64,000 bases of DNA from Monocercomonoides exilis PA203. Taxonomy: Eukaryota > Protista > Preaxostyla. The position numbers were made by a program, and so were the translations under genes. The notes under the pieces are model-generated. The model was not told where the DNA came from, did no database searches, and was given only the letters and a program-made list of their open reading frames with translations. Location of the stretch: contig LSRY02000005.1 in NCBI GenBank assembly GCA_001643675.2, positions 186,001 through 250,000 of the forward strand, read 5' to 3'. Positions 9,390 to 48,427 of the stretch are shown piece after piece; the first letter of the stretch is position 1, and every line of letters starts with the position of its first letter.

Positions 9390-11015
9390 TTAGTATTTCC
9401 ATCTATTCGTTATCATCATGCTGTATTTTAAATTTTTTTTTCTTTCAAATTGAGTTGTATCTTCTGCGCTTTCCTTATGCTCACTTTTCCATTCATCTTT
9501 TTCGTAATCTTCGTCATCTTCATATGTAAAGTCGCTGTCAATTTTTTTCTTTCTCGTTCTGATGATTCTTTTGGCAAAATTGCGACTTTCAGAATTGGTA
9601 TGGTGATCGTCATTGAATAAATTGTCTTCTGTTTGTGTGCATCCATCAATGCTATGTTTTTCATCGATTTTTGTATCCATTTTACACTTTCTTGATGATT
9701 TGATTTTCCGTTTTGGTGTGAAAGAATCAAATAGTTCCTTTTTTGCTTCATCTAAAGAAGTTAAGGAAGAAGATTTTGACAGTGATCCACTTATTTTTGA
9801 TAGAACTTGAGAAGCTGCTAGTGGCCATATTCCTGTATTCAGAAAAGCAGTTTTAATTACTGAAGGAGTGGTTGCTGCGGAGATTGCGTCTGGCAAAACC
9901 TCAGTAAGTGCCTTTCTGTAAGAAGAAGATGAATCATCCGAAGGGACTTTGTAATTATTGTTTAACGTTCTTTTCGATCTAGCGAAAATTAAGTTATCGC
10001 ATGGTTGTAGGATATGTGTCATGTTAGGAGGGAACTTTTTGATGAAGATTCTGCTTTTTTCTGCTTCACGAATGACATCTGAGCATGTATAAGTCGTATG
10101 GTTATCAAGAAGAATGAGAGCCTTTTTTGAAGATGTCGATTGGATTTTTTGATGAATGAGAGGAATCCAATTTTGAAGCATGATGATTTTATAGATTTCA
10201 GTGGTAGTCCATCCTGAAGGTGCAGGAATATAGTTAATATCAAAAAATTTTAAATTAGAAAATTCTTCTGGTATTTTCTTCTTTGGAAAAAGCAAAAAAT
10301 GAGGAAGATGAGAGTTATCTGAGCATACGCAATTACATAAAGTCGCGTTTGAAGATTTTCGAGGCTCAGGAGGAGAAGGAGGGATTTGATCCTTCAAACA
10401 GATGACCAACTTTGCAGAACTTTCTCCGATTTGAACAGAAGATTCATCGAAATTAAAAATATTGGTGACTTCGATATTGTTTCCTTCTACGATTTCTTTC
10501 ACTTCTTCAAACCTATTAGTCACACTTTCAGGGCTCTATGACCATATTTATGCAATTTCAAGTTGTCTTGCCAGGGCTGCCTTTAATATGGAGCTTCTTT
10601 GAACTAAATAATAAGATAATTTCGGATGAAGTTTCTCGTTTCCTTCTTCTTTTGTTGATTCCGTATTTAAAAAATTAATTGCCTAAAAAAACAAAGATTA
10701 AAAAATATACATATAAAAAAACGAAAACCATTTCCTGTATGTGCTTCATTCGAACTACAACTCCTTCTGATAATAAAGACAAAACCTGATTCTCAATTTT
10801 TTCCAGTTTTTCAGAATTTATAAGAGATGGTCTTCCTTCTTTTCCAACATCTCTGTTTTCCTTTTCAGCTGTTTTGCCTCTGTACCAAGCCTGCCTTGTT
10901 GTTGCTTTCGCTTTGACTGCAACATTCACTGTCAATGGATATGTTTTCTTGATTTCAAAAATTTTTCGAGATCTGGAATGAATTGTCCGATATGGGTGAT
11001 TTTTTTTGATATCAT
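9390..11015 (-). mobile_element. pogo/Fot1-like (IS630-Tc1-mariner, DDE_1) DD35D transposase, disrupted
   Basis: Catalytic motifs IFNFDESS, LLDNHTTY and THILQPCDNLIF, with 35 residues between D2 and D3. N-terminal HTH-region GRP motif in ORF 10675..10935. Probable short intron ~10684-10729. Stop and frameshift at ~10535-10555 between the two ORFs. Confidence 0.85.
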
Positions 11016-33495: not shown

Positions 33496-34550
33496 GTGTC
33501 AGAAATTTATCGGTACCCAAAAAATTATACGGGACCTAAATTTTCTGGCTCTCAAGAGCACTTTCAGAAAAAAATAAATAATAGAAAATAATTAATATAT
33601 TATAATATACTATTCCTGAAAATATTTTTGATTTTTTCAATATTTGTGAAAAGATCTGGTGTTTTTTGTTTTATTTTTTTGATCAAAGACTTGCTCGTAT
33701 TTTCATGAGCTTTTTGTTTTGAGTGTTTTGAATGTTGTTATTGATATTAGACTTATCTTTTTTTATGTATTTTTTGGGTATTTTTCATTGTCTAACACTT
33801 CATTTTTTTATTATTCTTTCCATTTCACTAAATTTCGATAAAATTTAAAAAAAATTGTGAAATAAGAGTTCCCATGTTTTTGTTCATAATAGAATAGTTA
33901 AAAAACTGATTGATATGTGTATCACCTAAATTTTGAAATGAAAAAATATGTTTTTTCGTTAATTCAAAAGGGGAAGAATGTAAATTATCAACAAGTGAAG
34001 GATGTCAGAAAAAAGAAAATCTTCAATTTTTAATGATCGAGATTATTATTCAAAAAAACATGTTTTTGTGTATTTTTGTGTTTAAAACTTCAAATCATAT
34101 TTTTTCATTTCAAAATTTAGGTGATACACATATCAATCAGTTTTTTAACTATTCTATTATGAACAAAAACATGGGAACTCTTATTTCACAATTTTTTTTA
34201 AATTTTATCGAAATTTAGTGAAATGGAAAGAATAATAAAAAAATGAAGTGTTAGACAATGAAAAATACCCAAAAAATACATAAAAAAAGATAAGTCTAAT
34301 ATCAATAACAACATTCAAAACACTCAAAACAAAAAGCTCATGAAAATACGAGCAAGTCTTTGATCAAAAAAATAAAACAAAAAACACCAGATCTTTTCAC
34401 AAATATTGAAAAAATCAAAAATATTTTCAGGAATAGTATATTATAATATATTAATTATTTTCTATTATTTATTTTTTTCTGAAAGTGCTCTTGAGAGCCA
34501 GAGAATTTAGGTCCCGATAAAAAAAAGGGGATATGATAAATTACTGACCC
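33496..34550. mobile_element. Foldback/MITE-like element: 455-bp inverted arms, 145-bp spacer, TA flanks
   Basis: Arms 33496-33950 and 34096-34550. The inner ~420 bp are near-identical (one mismatch seen); the outer ~35 bp are more diverged. Ends TA|GTGTCAG...CTGACCC|TA. Confidence 0.88.
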
Positions 34551-39690: not shown

Positions 39691-40310
39691 GAATAAGTTT
39701 TTTCAAATCTGAATAATTTTTCAACGTAAAAACTTGTGAAACACATTGTCCCTCATATATCTTGTTCAGAAACATTTATGATAAAAGGCAACAAGTCTTA
39801 TGTCACCAGAAAACAAATATTCTAATTGATCAAACAATAACATTAAAAATTAATATCTAGAACAGGGTTTTTTGGATGTTGAAGTTTATCATAGATAATC
39901 TTTCTCGTTTGTGAAATTTTGAATATTGATGATAAATAATTTTAACAGAGAGTTTCATAACATTCACCAATCTGTAAATATTTTGATCCTTGGAGACTTT
40001 TTAAAAAATTTGACACTTATCATTCATCTGTCAAAAAAAAAGCAACGAAAACATTCAAACGATAATAACAATTACTTTGAAAAGAACAAAATTGTATTCC
40101 AAAGCTTGTTTCGAAAAATCATTCATTATTTCATAATAATTTTGTTTAAAAATTTTTTCTTTAATAAATAATAATTAAAAACAACAGAAAATTTTTCGAA
40201 AATTTGATTTGAATTACTTCATGTATATGCATAATATATTTTTTCACATAAAAATTTTGTCCTCCTGAGTTATTGCAAAATTCCCCAAAAATTTCAAATT
40301 TTTCATAGAC

Positions 40311-40404
40311 AATTTCAAAATTATTGGGTTATTTCAAAATAACCCAATAATTTTGAAATTTTTTTTTATTTCACAATTCATCTAATTATTAGATGAATTG
40401 TGAA
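40311..40404. repeat. Two adjacent perfect palindromes (24-bp and 17-bp arms)
   Basis: 40311-40334/40337-40360 and 40370-40386/40388-40404 are exact reverse complements. Confidence 0.9.
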
Positions 40405-40616
40405 TAGATTTTTTTCATTTGAATAGATTCAACTTATTTGAATGAACTGGGTTTTTCTTAAATGAGGTCATGTTATTTTAAATGGTTGAAGTGACACTTG
40501 AATAAAGAACGATACACTTAAATAAAGTTTTTGTGAAAAAGTTGTGAACACTTATAATAATATTTTCACGTAGACCTGTGCGACACGACAAGCGAATTTT
40601 TGTTGCTGTCAGTCAC

Positions 40617-40620
<4 letters not shown>

Positions 40621-40663
<43 letters not shown>
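40621..40663. repeat. Poly(A) tract (~43 nt) just inside the element A left end
   Basis: Direct read. Confidence 0.9.
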
Positions 40664-40665
<2 letters not shown>

Positions 40666-41085
40666 CATTTTTTATGTCACAAAATTACTTTTGTCGCATT
40701 GAAACAATTCAATTTTATTTTATTTTAAATATTTCTTTTTTTTATATCATTTGATCGTTCAATCCATTATAACATAAACAGATTCATAAAACATTATTTT
40801 GCAACTAATGAGTTGTGAATCATATTTATCTTTTAATAAGAAGTGCTAACACAAATGTTCTCATGAGCAATTTTTGATTCGATAAACCTTTAATTCATTA
40901 AATCCAAACACGTTCAAATACAATATATATGAAGAAATTATAACGTTTCCTGAAGGAAATAAATGATGAAAATGCGAAAGATATTACCAAATGTTAATCC
41001 AATTGTTTGCATTCATTGTTACTATTTAATTCATGGAAATTGTATTTCTTTCTTTGTTTTTTATTCCGTATTGAATGTTGAGCTT

Positions 41086-42413
41086 GAGCATTGCACTGAG
41101 GATGAATAGAAGCAGAAGATCGAAGAAATGAATGAAATGATTGATGGAATGGGAAAAGAAGAAACAAATTTGGAGTTCACAAAAGAAATGTTCAACAAAA
41201 TGGATAAAATGAATGAAGAAAAGGAAATGTGTTTGGTAAATGCGTTTGTGTTGCTGAAGCACATGAGATATTGCATTTTCATGAAAAATATGCGGATTTT
41301 GTGGCTTGAGAAAGTCTTCGTTGAAAAAAAGAAAAAAAAAAGAAGATCAGAATTGAAGGAAAGAATGGAAAGGACGGGAAAAATGAAAAGCTTCTGGTTG
41401 ATATCAGCGAATGCTGTGTTTTTCTGAATGAATGAATTTCGTTGGAATCGATTTCCGTCTGTGAGCGCTATCTGCTGAAGGTTGGATTGAAGAAAGAGGA
41501 AAAGGAGGAGATTAAAAATGAAGTGGAAATGGCATTGCAGGGATTGAACAACATAGGATGTCGCGTATGAGCACTTCTTTTTCATTTTTGACATATTAAT
41601 TTTTTTTATTTATTCATTAATCGTTTTTTTTTATAAATTTAATTCTGATGAGGAAATCAAAAAAGAGCTGTATTTGAATAAGATAACAGAAATCATCAAA
41701 TATCATTAGGAGCATCGCAATCTGACGCAACTTGCTTATCAATCAGCTTAGCGGTTTTTGATTTGCAGATTCTTCCATGATGAAAGTTTGGAAGATATGA
41801 TTGTGAATGAGCTGCATTGTGCTAGAGAAGCAAGAAGAGAATTGGTAGAGCTGACAAGATATGTTGATTGGAAGAGAAAAGAAGAAGAAAGAAAGAAAGA
41901 AACGAAGGAAGAGCTAATTTTGTCAAGATGGATTGAAACATTGGGGATTTTCTTTCGCATTTTCCGATTATGGAATGAATAATTTATTATGTCTTTAAGC
42001 AGTGTTGAAAGAGTGCATAGAGAATCAAGAATCAAACACAGAGAAATCAACGAGCAGCGCATTTATATAATTGAAGCAGCAGGCAACAAAGATGTGACAA
42101 TTGATGGCTTGTTGAAAGATGGAGCTATTGATCTCGTTTTATAGGAACTTCAGCAATTAACAATGGAAAGAAGAACGGCATGCCAAAGTTTGATATTATG
42201 CTTGTCAATTTCAAAAAAAAAAAAAGTGAAGAAGAGAGACGAAATGGAAGAAGAGAAAAGAAAGAGCTGAAAAGGAAAGTGCTTGAAAAGATGGCAGAAG
42301 AAGGATGCGAAGATATCGTAGCTAGCATCCGAGGATTGATTCGATTTCATAACGAAGAAAATAATATTGATGATTTGTCATTCAAAATTTCTTTTTATTT
42401 TGTGAATGTTTGA
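41086..42413 (+). pseudogene. Decayed paralog of the 62032-63354 helical-protein family (cargo of element A)
   Basis: ELYLNKITEIIKYH*EHRNLTQLAYQSA*RFL aligns with EPYLSEIKEIILYHQEHRNLTRLAYQSAWSFL. Shared VEMAL..L.NIG motif before an intron-like tract and shared M.EEG.ED near the C-terminus. Frameshifts and stops. Confidence 0.8.
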
Positions 42414-43613
42414 CCAGATACATTTCATTTTATATTTTAACTCAAAAATTTCTTCCTTCTTGTTCATATCTCAAAATTGAAAACAAATGCTTGAGGGTTT
42501 GATAACGTTTTTTTTATTTATTATAATTTCTTTAAAAAATGAAGTGAGACCTAATCGCATTAATATAAAGAGAAAATTGCATTGAAGATTATTCCATACA
42601 ATTCTTTTCTTCTTCAGAAAACATCTACAAGAAATTTGTTGCTTCAACGTTTCGGTGGAAAAAAAAATGAATTCCATTCTTCATTTTTCTTTCATAACCT
42701 CCAGCTGCCTTTCGTCTTCTCCGATGAAAATTTCATTCATTTCTGCTGGTTTTTCTCAATTCTTTTCAATTGGAATTCTTTCTTTAAACATTTCCATTTA
42801 TTTTCATAGAATCTGTTTATTTTCGCATTACATAAGAATGGAGAATGCAAAGAAAGAATAATTACATCGAGTATGACAAACTATGTGTAGAAAATATCAA
42901 GCGAACATGAATAGTGTTGCATTCGTGAGAATTTTGAGTAGTTAAATGAATGTTCTGTTAAAATATCAATTTTTCAGCAATCGAAAAAACACAAAATCAG
43001 CATTCTCCTTGTAAATATTGATAGATCATTATTTCATTAATTTCTTAGAATGACACACATTTTAATGATTAAAATTCAGCACTTTCTGTTCAGCTTATCT
43101 AATAATCTCAGCCCACTTATTACATATGAGTGAATTTGTTCGATTTCTTTGTTCATGGTCTGTACACACTTTTATCTTCATCACTAATTCAAATGCTCCA
43201 TTAGGTCATTGGTATTGCTTTTTTCTTCCATATTAAAAAATAAGAATTTCATCCTTTATTTCGAAAAAGATCCGGAATAAACATTCAAAAACTTTGTTAG
43301 GTATGTTTTCATTATAAAATAAGAAATGAATTTTCAAATGATAAAATCACATCACATGAAGAAAATTGAAAAAAGAGTCAAACAAACAAAAATTAATGAA
43401 ATTATGAAATTAACAAACATATCCATTTTCAAACAATCGTTAAAAGAAAATGTCTTCCAATGTGCATTCTTCAGATATTTTTTTGGACACATGTTTGGTT
43501 CTTTCAACGAAAATAAAGGATTATCAAATATCAAATGAAAAGTTATGGTTGCAATTGATGGAAAAATGAAATCTCAAACATTTCACAAGCTCAGCAAGTT
43601 ATTTTGTTATTCT

Positions 43614-46600
43614 TAAACCTGTGTGACGTGATGAAATTTTTGTCTTCACGTCCGTCAGTGATGGTTGGTTACGTCAGTGGTGTTTTTTTTTTTTTTTTTA
43701 ATAGAAAAAAGATAACTTAATTATTAATAGTGAACATTTTTTATTTTTGAATAAAAATTTTATTTTAAATAATTTTAAAAGGTGCAATTTTTGATTTGAT
43801 AATCTTTTTCCCATAAATCGATTTCAATTTTAAATTAAGAATGAGTTGCTTTTAATCAGAGATCCAACGCCTCATTTGCACAATAATGTTCATAATGTGT
43901 CACTCCACTACTTTTCACATAACGATTGATGTATCTAGCACTTATACGGTTTAATATTATTTAAAACTCTCTGATTTTTCATTTTGATGTTTTTTCTTTT
44001 TTTAATCAAATTTTCATATCTCTGCCCACTATTCTCAAGTATTTCATTTCTTAATTGCTTATTTTAGACAATCACTGAATGCCTCTTATGTTTGAATGTT
44101 TGTTGAATTTTATCATAGAATATTTAAAAAGATTTCTCTTTTTCATCATTTCCTCCGCATCCTTTCCTGTACCCACGCTCTTTCATCGATTCAACCTTCA
44201 ATTTAGAACAAACAACTTCATTTTTCAGACATGCTCTTCATCAAATGCTGCTGTAGTGCATGTTAGAACCGAAACTCAAAGATAAACACCAGGATGATTG
44301 ATTTTATTCTATTTAAACAGCCATCCCTTCGAATGGTGTGAATGGAATGATTCAAATGGAGGATCAAGTTGTGGTGGAGCACTTCGTGTTGAATGCGCAA
44401 ATGCAAATCTCTCAATCATTTCGTATTTATTCGACAATTGTTACTGTACAGGAAATGGTGAAGGAAGAGCAATATTCTGTCGATATTTATTACAAATCAG
44501 CATTACAAAATCTAATTTTTCGAATTGTCAGGCGAGACATGGAGGTGCTGTAGAAATATGGAATCCGCAATCAAATTCTGATTGGACATTCTCAGAAAAC
44601 AGAGTTGAAAGTTGTAAAATAATTGATTGGAATAGATCAGGTTGGTATTTCGATATATATCCTTTGCCATCAAACTGTCAATTACTGTTCACAAACTGCA
44701 AGTGCATCGCAAATTCTTGTGGTGATGCTGCTGGTTCTCTAACATTTCAGAATCCTCCAGGCAACAAACTAAGTCAGTTTTTGATAAATGATTGTCAGCT
44801 CTTAAACAATAAATTGACATCAACTTCATCTACACGCGGTGGAGCTGCCATCTCTTTGGATGCATCCTTCACTTGGATGAATGAAATTAGATTCATCACC
44901 TTCTGCTTCTTCGATAGCAATTCCGCAACCAATGGCACAGGGAATGATGTGTTCTTCAGTGGCAATGCAATCACCAAATCTCCTTTGCAGCAATGCGGTT
45001 CAACAACAGAATCAAAAAGAGTGTGGAATGCAGGAACAGCTGACAATGCAGTGTACAACAGTTGGCTTCCTCTTATCCCTTCGATTAAAATAGTTGGCAA
45101 CAGTGGAACAGATGCTTGCGGCTGTGGCAGAACACAGCAAATGCCATGCGCCACAATTGAGTTTGCCCTCAGCGGCTTCATCTCCCTCCAAGACGCCTCT
45201 TCACCCTCCTCACCTCAACATTTGTTCCCATTCAAACACTCACTTTCAGCGCGGTTGATACAAAAAATCACAGGAAATGGCACAACTGCCACCACCATTG
45301 CCTCCAGTGGCATTCCTCAACCACCAAACTCACATTCACAATCATCAACATCAACATCTTCTTCACCAGATCCATCTGCCTCGTCTGCCCTCTTCCAACA
45401 AACACAAGGTACCCTCACAGTCTCTGCCCTCGCCATCTCCCACAACTCCTCAAATCCCATCACCCCCATCCTCTTCCACCTCTCCAAAAACTCCCCTTCC
45501 CTCAACCTCAACACAACCACCATCACCGGAACAACCCCATCTTCATCATCAATCACAACCCCCCTCTTCTTCCTCACTGCTGGCTCCCTCGCCCTCAACC
45601 ACACAGCAATCACCAGTCTCACCCTCAACAGTCAAAGCATCTTCCACCTCACCTCCCTCACAAATCCTCTCACCCTCAACTCCTCCAACATCACCGGCAT
45701 CACCTCCACTGCCACTCCAGCCAGCTGTGTCCTCTCCTCTGCCACCTCCCCTGCCCTCTCCCTCTCCCTCGCCAACTGCACCATTACCAACATCAACTCA
45801 GCTCCACAAAACCAACAGACTGCCACCAATGGCGGGTGCATCTCATTCGCCTCATCTGCCTTTGCTAACACATTTTCTGTGGGCAACACCAAATTCACTG
45901 AATGTGATATGAGCAAAGAAGAATCGAAGAATTAGAAAGAGAGAAAAGCGAATACTCAGAGATCGGAACATGTTGGTGGACATGAAAGGAAAACTCAAAC
46001 GAAACCTGTTTCAAGCGGATCAAAGAGAATGACATTCTGCGGGGATGATGCGAAAAAGAATGATAAAAAAGATAATAATAAAGAAACAAAAAAAATTTGA
46101 ATTAAGAGAAAAGATGTTAAAGAAGATGAATGAATAAACCAGATAACTGTTTCATTTCGCAAGCTTTCTATGATTTACAGGTTAACAAAAGCAACAAAAT
46201 ACAATACGGTGATTTTTTTTAAAATTTCGAGATGAATTATTAAGTATTTTTGATAAAGCAATAAAAATCAACGTGCTTCAAAAATATCTTCTGCATATTT
46301 CTCGGATTTGATGTGAGACATTGAAGAAAAAATATAAAAAATTTGAGAGCATTTGTTAACAATAAGTTATAATTATATTTAATATTGAATCCATTTTCAA
46401 AGCTATAAAGAAGTGTCAAACTTCTCAAAACATTTCATTCATTCGAACAAACTATTCAGCCCTCATCTTCTGTTGACAAAGAGAGAGAAAAAAGTTCTGC
46501 AAAGTTATAAAAGTCTTTTGTGCTTTTCACCATTCCATGCAATATCTTTATCAAAAATTTCTGATCATCTTTCAATTCTTCTAGTACTGTATGATTCTTC

Positions 46601-47529
46601 CATTTCGCAATCATTATTCTCGACACAATTTGTTTCATGTTTATGACATCCAAAAAACTTTTTTCTATCACTCGTTTTCGAAGAAAAATTCTTCATGCGT
46701 TTCTGAAAAAATTGCGTTCAATAAATCAAGTGATGAAGATAAGGAAGGCAGGCGCTTCAAGTCGATCGAAGAAATTGATAAATACTTTTCAACGTTGTCG
46801 GGAAAGAAAGATGAATGAAAAAAAACGAAAATAACATTTTATTGAAAAGGAATTTGTTGAAGCCGAGTCTTCAATATATTTGTGTGCGTAACAAAGAGAT
46901 GAAGATAAACCGTGAGTAGTTTGTTATCTGACTACTGGCTTTGGACATTTTAGTGAACTTTGTGAACTTGTTAATAAAAAAAATAGTTCTATAAAATTTA
47001 TCATTAAAAAAACAAACCATTTTCTGATACTGTTTCATTCTGGACAAATTGTTGATTTTTTTTTAGGTCAAGTTTTTTTTGTGTGTTCTCGCTGCACGTG
47101 TTCAATTTTGATTTGTTCCATAATTACTTGAGAAAAGCGTTAAAATTCTTCATCGCACGATTCTATTTCACCTTCATCATAGGAAAATGCAACTTTTTCA
47201 CCAATTAGTATTTATTTCAATTTTTTGTCCAACATCGAAATGCTGACTTGCCCTGACGGTCATGACCGTCACCGTCGATCTATAATTCCTTTTTTGCCTA
47301 TCTGTCAGTTTCCCATTGTAACTTTTTCATTGTTTAAAAGTGATAAAAAAAGTCTTTTGATTTTCTTGTATAAATAATAAATTTAAAAATGAAATTAAAT
47401 GAATTATTTGATTTTTTTGAGCTTTCACGAAAAATTAAAACTTTTATAAATAACTGACGTGAATATTTTTGTTGAGTCCGTCAGAATTGAAAATTTTCAT
47501 GTCAATGGTCATTACGTCACTCAGGTTTA
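43614..47529. mobile_element. Element B: non-autonomous hAT-like transposon nested in A, with gene cargo
   Basis: TIR TAAACCTGTGTGACGTGATGA / TCATTACGTCACTCAGGTTTA (19/21). 8-bp TSD GTTATTCT at 43606-43613 and 47530-47537. Subterminal CGTCAGT motifs. Confidence 0.88.
44298..45935 (+). CDS. Truncated beta-helix surface-protein fragment (cargo of element B); no TM or kinase part
   Basis: 545-aa ORF with CGGALRV, HGGAVEI, RGGAAI and GTDACGCGRTQQMPCATI motifs, homologous to the first ectodomain module of 18374-27351. Confidence 0.7.
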   Translation: MILFYLNSHPFEWCEWNDSNGGSSCGGALRVECANANLSIISYLFDNCYCTGNGEGRAIFCRYLLQISITKSNFSNCQARHGGAVEIWNPQSNSDWTFSENRVESCKIIDWNRSGWYFDIYPLPSNCQLLFTNCKCIANSCGDAAGSLTFQNPPGNKLSQFLINDCQLLNNKLTSTSSTRGGAAISLDASFTWMNEIRFITFCFFDSNSATNGTGNDVFFSGNAITKSPLQQCGSTTESKRVWNAGTADNAVYNSWLPLIPSIKIVGNSGTDACGCGRTQQMPCATIEFALSGFISLQDASSPSSPQHLFPFKHSLSARLIQKITGNGTTATTIASSGIPQPPNSHSQSSTSTSSSPDPSASSALFQQTQGTLTVSALAISHNSSNPITPILFHLSKNSPSLNLNTTTITGTTPSSSSITTPLFFLTAGSLALNHTAITSLTLNSQSIFHLTSLTNPLTLNSSNITGITSTATPASCVLSSATSPALSLSLANCTITNINSAPQNQQTATNGGCISFASSAFANTFSVGNTKFTECDMSKEESKN

Positions 47530-48427
47530 GTTATTCTGTTTCTTTTTCAAACGTGTTTATTTCATTGACAAAATGTAATGTCAGTGACAGAAGTGACATC
47601 CAGTGACATATTAAATTCCTTGTTTCACAGATCATGTCAGTGAAAATTTAATTTTGGAACATTAGATTAATTGAATTTTCAAAAATTTTGCAAAAAATAT
47701 TCAATATTTCTTTATCAAATATTTTTTATCATGTTTGACAAAGAAAAAATCACTGCTGATTTCTTTTCTTCTCTTTCTGTTTTCTTTCTTTTTTCATTTT
47801 GTTGAAATCAATATTTCCTTCCATGTTCCAACAAAATTTTCTAATTTTGTTGAAACATGAAACATTCTGTCAATTATTTAAAAAAAAAAATATTGGCACA
47901 TTTTATTTTTCAGTACTCAGAAATACTCCCAAAAATGAAGTAAATAAAAAAATAATGGTTGTGATCAGTAAAAATTGTCCTGTCGGTCACCTATGTCAGT
48001 TTCTGACAAATTTTGCCACTTGTCGCACAGGTTTATTTTCACGTTTTATCTTTCACTTTATCAACAAAAAATTAAAAAATCCAAATTTTTTGTGATTTTT
48101 CAATATTCTCAAACAAAATTTGAGACATATTAAAAGAAGATTTAATTTTACAAAAAGAGAGCGAAATATCGAAAATTTATAATTTATTCTTGTTCCTCTA
48201 TTCTATTTTTAACATTTTCACATTTTTTTTGATCTCTGTGTAATTAAATATCTCAAATAAAAATTTGTTTCTTTTGATGTTCGCAGAGCAATCAACAACA
48301 AACAAAGTAAATATTTTTGAAGCTCTCAGTCGAGTCGACAGATTGATGCAGCTTTCATCTTTGCCACTTTCTCCATTGACTGGACATATTTCATTTTCAT
48401 TGATAGATTTCTTTTTTCAAACCTCTC

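Follow-up and report, generated by a model that had tools for sequence, protein, structure and literature searches.

The 64-kb stretch of the Monocercomonoides exilis PA203 genome considered here (the window) contains two DNA transposons, element A (40571-48035) and element B (43614-47529), the second nested in the first. That both are real elements is confirmed, as is their description in an earlier note on this DNA: they have an end motif in common, each is flanked by its own perfect 8-bp target-site duplication (TSD), and B lies inside A. The explanation that we favor, and consider probable when taken as a whole, is that A and B belong to two families of non-autonomous, Pack-type hAT elements, that each family arose from one capture of host DNA, that the captured cargo was later overwritten in places from host paralogs, and that this cargo is a passenger rather than the source from which the host gene families expanded.

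In the window, the 14-bp end motif has exactly four occurrences, at 40571 (+), 43614 (+), 47529 (-) and 48035 (-), which form two nested inverted pairs. The resulting terminal inverted repeats (TIRs) are imperfect and begin TA(A/G). Element A is flanked by the TSD TTTTCACG at 40563-40570 and 48036-48043, and B by GTTATTCT at 43606-43613 and 47530-47537. When the window was scanned, without reference to the motif, for inverted ends that carry perfect 8-bp duplications, the only pairs beyond A and B were two artefacts of one long palindrome. The left end of A (40571-40665, + strand) consists of the TIR, TGAC-type subterminal repeats and a poly-A run and is conserved across A-type copies; among 18 A-type elements the first 48 bp have a median identity of 90%, as against 72% in the interior. 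Its right end (47538-48035, - strand) is a TGAC-rich subterminal region closed by the TIR at 48022-48035. B has a TIR and subterminal repeats at its left end (43614-43700, + strand), which is common to the 8.3-kb transposase elements described below, and at its right end (47441-47529, - strand; TIR at 47516-47529).

The nesting of B in A arose by transposition, since in six sister A elements the target of B is present once at the equivalent place (exact in four, with one or two changes in two) and since A without B is colinear with its sisters. The earlier note had suggested looking for just such empty sites. Removal of B and one TSD leaves 3,541 bp that align end to end with L029 (85% identity), L015 (82%) and L026 (74%), each of which has its own TSD; L-numbers denote regions fetched from the genome and C-numbers its contigs, the window itself being G000:C47:186001-250000. 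Two further insertions lie close to the spot that B occupies. L033 (G000:C38:434989-441336) is a composite in which an A element has landed 5 bp away from B's insertion site in A; a near-perfect duplication brackets the outer left end together with the inner right end, and the pair may have moved as one. L038 (G000:C47:1812566-1820895) is an A-type element with a 4.8-kb DIRS-like retrotransposon, in which overlapping reverse transcriptase/RNase H and tyrosine recombinase frames are both open, inserted ~45 bp upstream of B's site. With B, these make three insertions within ~50 bp of one subterminal spot. The 8.3-kb length of L038 was considered as a sign of autonomy and rejected, as it is a 3.5-kb A element enlarged by the retrotransposon.

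A search of the M. exilis genome (82.3 Mb, 101 contigs) gave 128 matches to the end motif, compared with 20 for a reversed control, and 40 regions were fetched, a sample that comprises about half of the matches and favors exact TIRs. The scan for inverted motif pairs with 8-bp TSDs that the earlier note had proposed found a perfect TSD at 28 of the 32 adjacent exact TIR pairs in the fetched regions; two more had one mismatch, one was a composite and one was a short copy without a TSD. Nor are the other copies free of cargo, which the earlier note had named, along with a lack of motif enrichment, as fatal to its reading: cargo is present in 20 of 20 long A-type elements and in 10 of 12 B-type copies. 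Two types of ends, A and B, can be told apart; in each, the left end differs from the right, and hexamers with a TGAC/GTCA core are repeated near both. Most elements are 2.8-4.0 kb long. Two miniature A-type elements of 335-356 bp (L024 and L039) are 91% alike, with a TSD in L039 only, and a 4.4-kb A-type copy (L040:301-4720) has a 9-bp duplication and, 11 bp further on, another A-type left end.

These families appear to combine old lineages with fresh insertions. The closest genome copy of A is at most 84% identical and that of B at most 89%, and the most distant copies are 60-75% identical. Six of the seven fetched copies without a sampled sister above 76% keep perfect TSDs, where about one would be expected if the insertion were as old as the split; the pattern is consistent with elements that went on moving by cut-and-paste and were seldom copied. 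Among the B-type copies, 5' and 3' parts are also found in mosaic combinations. With respect to the Hermes-like target preference nTnnnnAn, 32 of 70 sites have T at position 2 after strand symmetrisation, a frequency not clearly above the AT-rich background.

Looking for a hAT transposase between the same TIRs, as the earlier note had advised, was productive for both end types. Three B-type copies (L013, L037 and L041; 8.3-8.6 kb, with perfect TSDs) encode a hAT-like transposase in which two aspartate motifs, CxxH, RW and a late glutamate motif were recognized by inspection. The protein matches the hAT dimerisation domain PF05699 at 19.9 bits (E 6.6e-4), just under the cut-off of 21.4, and its nearest Atlas clusters are hAT/ZBED1/DUF659 at 0.92. 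The ratio of nonsynonymous to synonymous divergence (dN/dS) between the three copies is 0.37, and a frame break common to them resembles a GC-AG intron, with the acceptor altered in L013. When the exons were searched separately, sequence searches of the protein collection and the PDB gave no match, and a Pfam search with the transposase cores returned DUF659 at E 0.08 only. For the A type, a PF05699 match of 29.4 bits, above the cut-off, is located at C48:126550, inside an 8.2-kb A-type TIR pair (C48:121625-129833). The three B-type elements have further open frames downstream of the transposase (L013:5532-6494, also in L037 and L041) that belong to no Pfam family and have a dN/dS of 0.3-0.5 between copies, and at least 41 hAT dimerisation-domain matches genome-wide, many of them in frames of 850-1,000 amino acids, come from families other than A and B.

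The autonomous B-type elements and the short elements have only ~55-90 terminal bases in common, and because of this the short elements, as judged from sequence, are not deletion derivatives of the former. The earlier note saw no recognisable transposase in A or B, and this holds: the long open reading frame (ORF) of B has no Pfam match, and what A and B share with the transposase elements is limited to the ends. From the biology of hAT elements, we infer that hAT transposase from elements with the same ends would move the A and B families in trans by cut-and-paste. The TIRs of hAT elements start with (T/C)A. Merlin elements have GG-starting TIRs and an IS1016-like transposase, and Mutator-like elements (MULEs) have long TIRs and TSDs of 9-11 bp; membership in either group was rejected, as the TIRs here are 14 bp long and start with TA, the TSD is 8 bp and the partner enzyme is hAT-like. 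The families have the features by which hAT elements are recognized, namely 8-bp TSDs, short TA-starting TIRs, dissimilar ends with subterminal repeats and a hAT transposase between the same ends.

The cargo of A is a captured armadillo-like helical-family pseudogene (41050-42413, + strand, 5' limit approximate; profile matches at 41352-42410), and the adjoining interior (42414-43605) has no long frame and is colinear in sister copies. The pseudogene has five stops and one frameshift over 324 aligned codons and retains an intron near 41557-41645. The earlier note had recognized a paralog at 62 kb, and the two are indeed 68% identical at the DNA level; that gene, MONOS_11789 (62032-63354, + strand), is an intact host member with no stops or frameshifts and lies outside the TIR/TSD pairs seen in the window. 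The best match of A's cargo among the sampled proteins is 52% identical in amino acids, and host matches to A are confined to its gene part. The family is predicted by modeling to be an all-helical repeat protein; ARM repeats lead the fold search with a TM-score of ~0.5, and a Foldseek search of the model gave no match at E<=0.001. A first look at the genome gave ~1,700 search candidates for the helical family, and its database matches were all from M. exilis (97/97, as far as names were shown). Each of the 20 long A-type elements carries the gene in the same orientation and at roughly the same position, with L040 as an additional carrier. None of the 21 scored copies is intact: they contain 1-8 stops and as many as 6 frameshifts, and the intron is retained in nearly all of them. 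Some of the frameshifts could be assembly errors, which is less likely for the stops.

The cargo of B is a captured internal ectodomain exon of a gene for a giant, transmembrane, tyrosine-kinase-like receptor (44217-45935, + strand), matching residues 310-858 of MONOS_16610 at 59% identity; the remaining interior (45936-47440) has no long frame and is mosaic among B copies. The open frame (44298-45935) encodes a predicted beta-helix and a Ser/Thr-rich part. No signal peptide, transmembrane segment or kinase part was found in this frame, which is broken just upstream, and a fold search with the model gave no match at E<=0.001, with beta-helix enzymes leading weakly. The exon is carried by 10 of the 12 short B-type copies, the other two being the L020 pair discussed below. 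Proteins of the source family have 2,200-2,650 residues, with a hydrophobic segment late in the sequence and a kinase-like part at the C terminus; the closer relatives of the cargo are MONOS_16610, MONOS_13179, MONOS_5057 and MONOS_2314 (58-68% amino acid identity). The genome holds 470-670 search candidates for this receptor family, and tyrosine kinases are the largest published family of the M. exilis genome (PMC6759080). The earlier note was right to read the cargo as a beta-helix receptor ectodomain fragment, but the paralog at 18-27 kb to which it pointed is only a distant relative (27% identity over 237 amino acids) and was rejected as the source. Receptor-exon sequence also occurs elsewhere: the gene model MONOS_10185 (P0101) combines a Harbinger-type DDE nuclease with a segment that has 73% identity to the B cargo, which is either a fused model or a capture by another transposon group, and G000:C25 holds many receptor-exon copies, often in opposite-orientation pairs with equal scores.

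Pack-type elements often, though not necessarily, combine fragments of several unrelated loci; one gene family was identified per element here. Among the top 40 candidates scored, the best parent-gene match is 59-68% in amino acids for B, 52% for A (among sampled proteins) and 82-86% in DNA for single tracts. No close parent emerged from these, and the capture is taken to be old. The ancestor of each family would have captured host DNA once, an armadillo-like gene in the case of A and a receptor-kinase ectodomain exon in the case of B, and capture would have been at the DNA level, because the intron is kept in the A cargo. The fixed position of the cargo, the colinear non-coding interiors and the approximately unbiased (AU) test, which does not reject a single clade of A cargo (p 0.86; constrained tree 74 log-likelihood units better), point to one old founding capture for each family and, on at least one occasion, a second capture or a swap. 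The latter is called for because the helical gene, otherwise the cargo of A-type elements, is present in the two B-type copies of L020. These copies (G000:C17:74570-83340) are inverted, 99.9% identical and 1.8 kb apart and have different TSDs, as in a local hop.

An alternative is that empty elements picked up different host paralogs over and over, as in rice Pack-MULEs. The A-lineage cargo copies are as far apart (~37% amino acid identity) as they are from host genes (41%), several show higher identity to a host protein than to the copy in another element, a free tree scatters them, and the L020 pair itself entails a second capture or swap. Against repeated capture, the same family, strand and position recur in 20 of 20 copies whose non-coding interiors are colinear, and the one-clade tree scores higher and is not rejected by the AU test; the polyphyly of A cargo indicated by the quick tree was rejected, as that test does not uphold it. 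We consider repeated independent capture unlikely.

The part of our preferred explanation that concerns overwriting comes from comparison of sister elements, which are 85-99% alike outside the cargo and have sharp divergent tracts inside it; clustering of this kind was reached in 0 of 2,000 permutations. The A cargo contains two replaced tracts (~41770-41970 and ~42070-42280, + strand), identified by comparison with L029, that are 61-71% identical to sisters whose flanks are 85-95% identical, and L015 differs from L029 over 200 bp. The B cargo has a divergent tract of ~600 bp (44613-45213, + strand) that is 69-81% identical to the sister L027, with flanks mostly at 90-99%. For this tract, dS is 0.86 and dN is 0.19, and because of these values the two versions are read as having diverged while they were working genes, rather than during the decay of the cargo. 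The L015 tract is 86% identical to C23:812113 and ~65% to its sister, and the second tract of A is 83% identical to the host paralog at C39:456484, with sisters absent from the top 40 matches. The C39:456484 locus matches the gene part of A only, and an exact TIR search found none on the contigs of these donor-like paralogs (C23 and C39). Because the two tested tracts match host paralogs better than sister elements, the data point to gene conversion from host paralogs into the elements, with these paralogs as candidate donors. The tract of L027 was set aside as weak evidence for a donor, being 84% identical to the C25 arrays and 82% to sister elements. Since hundreds of host genes are homologous to the cargo, tracts of 200-600 bp would have been overwritten in this way, probably during break repair; the elements also recombine among themselves. 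The earlier note had proposed that the elements shuffle pieces of the families, and the tract matches indicate that shuffling is real, with host paralogs and sister elements as sources and the element as recipient, which is the only direction shown.

The low dN/dS between B copies (0.16-0.57) could be taken to mean that the B frame is selected inside the element as a secreted or chimeric beta-helix product, and frames of 545, 526 and 459 codons are open in B, L027 and L017. The low ratios coincide, however, with dS of ~0.9 in sharp tracts beside flanks that are 95% identical, which points to import from functional paralogs; moreover, other copies have stops or large deletions, and the B frame itself has no signal peptide and is interrupted just upstream. 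Selection on the frame is accordingly doubtful. An equally doubtful idea is that the elements form a silent mobile archive in two-way exchange with the armadillo-like and receptor-kinase families, from which tracts are written back into expressed genes. If so, the receptor ectodomains would be diversified in a manner akin to silent cassettes in antigen-switching systems.

More improbable still is that the elements drove the host expansions, with the ~1,700 helical genes and several hundred receptor genes having spread as cargo whose ends were later lost. The families are huge and dispersed, the cargo is drawn from exactly these families, and the assembly paper reports that kinases overlap unclassified repeats (PMC8767320). 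Yet all 21 scored A cargo copies are broken while the host gene at 62 kb is intact with no TIR/TSD pair in the window, B holds ~550 of 2,200-2,650 residues and neither a transmembrane segment nor a kinase, host matches are confined to the gene part of A, and none of 81 other annotated family proteins exceeds 56% identity to an element copy. The earlier note had inferred a system that disperses the expanded families. In that form the inference is not supported: the cargo is fixed by family, and there are dozens of copies as against ~1,700 and 470-670 candidates. A few dozen dead copies do not explain the sizes of the host families. Least credible of all is an assembly artefact or chance motif, since even a Nanopore assembly with homopolymer errors cannot yield the motif enrichment, perfect TSDs at ~30 loci, an empty site in sisters and transposase partners, and 39-61% of sampled words were present in four DNA runs, probably from the source sample.

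In the sequence of events that we propose, the cargo would have decayed while the elements kept moving, therefore leaving fresh TSDs; B would have inserted later, into the right subterminal region of A; and the cargo would have been a passenger that took in host sequence, and not a source of family expansion. Several points weigh against this account. Mobility is deduced from distinct TSDs and from the empty site of B. The A-type transposase partner was seen only in part (L005), and the comparison with the A type covers that part. The sample of about half of the motif matches was selected for exact TIRs, which favors young insertions. The AU outcome may reflect long-branch attraction among decayed copies, which were dispersed in the quick, unconstrained tree (12 changes). 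The donor loci are candidates placed by sequence match, with 86% as the highest identity reached, and a genome search for a close donor of B's own tract gave none above 82% (best 78-82%). Finally, host-gene origin is assigned to the cargo only, which leaves ~1.2 kb in A and ~1.5 kb in B outside it.

Like Pack-TYPE elements, the A and B families lack a transposase, have interiors that are not deletion derivatives, contain a host gene fragment as genomic DNA, and have transposed after capture, with different TSDs. Pack-hAT and other Pack-TYPE elements are described in maize and rice (Gisby and Catoni, bioRxiv 10.1101/2021.06.18.448592 = PMC8903248), and these too are non-autonomous TIR elements with 8-nt TSDs and host coding DNA inside that form multicopy clusters, as well as composite units from neighboring insertions (compare L033). 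They differ in that each M. exilis family has a single cargo, old and fixed, which was drawn from a multigene family of very large size, that this cargo has no single close parent and is patched from paralogs, and that the host is a metamonad protist. The earlier note held gene-capturing Pack elements to be known mainly from plants; plant Pack-hATs exist, but such capture is also described in animals (PMC8277862) and fungi (PMC6710886). In Pseudocercospora fijiensis and related fungi, a hAT-borne histone H3 was captured once and amplified as inactivated copies while the host gene stayed intact (PMC6710886). There the carrier is a complete hAT element and the captured gene is killed by repeat-induced point mutation, whereas the M. 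exilis carriers lack a transposase and their cargo comes from lineage-specific families and is mosaic. Among animal Pack-TIRs, 208 of 370 cases are hAT, and multicopy examples (Pack-hAT-N8_XT, Ssk-FB4) likewise contain captured host DNA and transposed repeatedly, as indicated by distinct TSDs (PMC8277862). Capture in animals is attributed to gap filling or template switching, and neither gene conversion nor protists are mentioned (PMC8277862). Animal Pack-TIRs are mostly single-copy with identifiable parents, in contrast to the dozens of copies and old, still-moving lineages in M. exilis. Hermes/Ac-type hAT elements (PMC10368747) have the same short imperfect TIRs, asymmetric ends, short subterminal repeats, 8-bp TSD and hAT-motif transposase; the M. 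exilis transposases differ in being very divergent, with no sequence match in the protein collection or PDB, and in having an intron and residing in 8.3-kb elements that contain an additional conserved ORF region.

The earlier note knew of no description of Pack-hATs in oxymonads, and a literature search found none. With A and B, Pack-type gene capture by hAT elements extends to an oxymonad, and the elements put a name on part of the 35% 'unclassified repeats' of the assembly, although the size of the host families is left unexplained by them. They also serve as a warning that the MONOS gene models may in some cases describe cargo of transposons. What most merits pursuit is the patchwise overwriting by divergent paralogs, and the families offer a test case for recombination between sequences 65-85% alike, in which element flanks act as a clock and imported tracts can be mapped and dated.

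Other features of the window lie outside the two elements. Two short, near-perfect, AT-rich hairpins stand directly left of A (40290-40415), a perfect 425-bp inverted repeat with a 137-bp spacer occupies 33530-34516, and an ORF at 9390-10523 (- strand) encodes a DDE_1 transposase domain (PF03184, pogo/Tc1-mariner type; E 1e-13).

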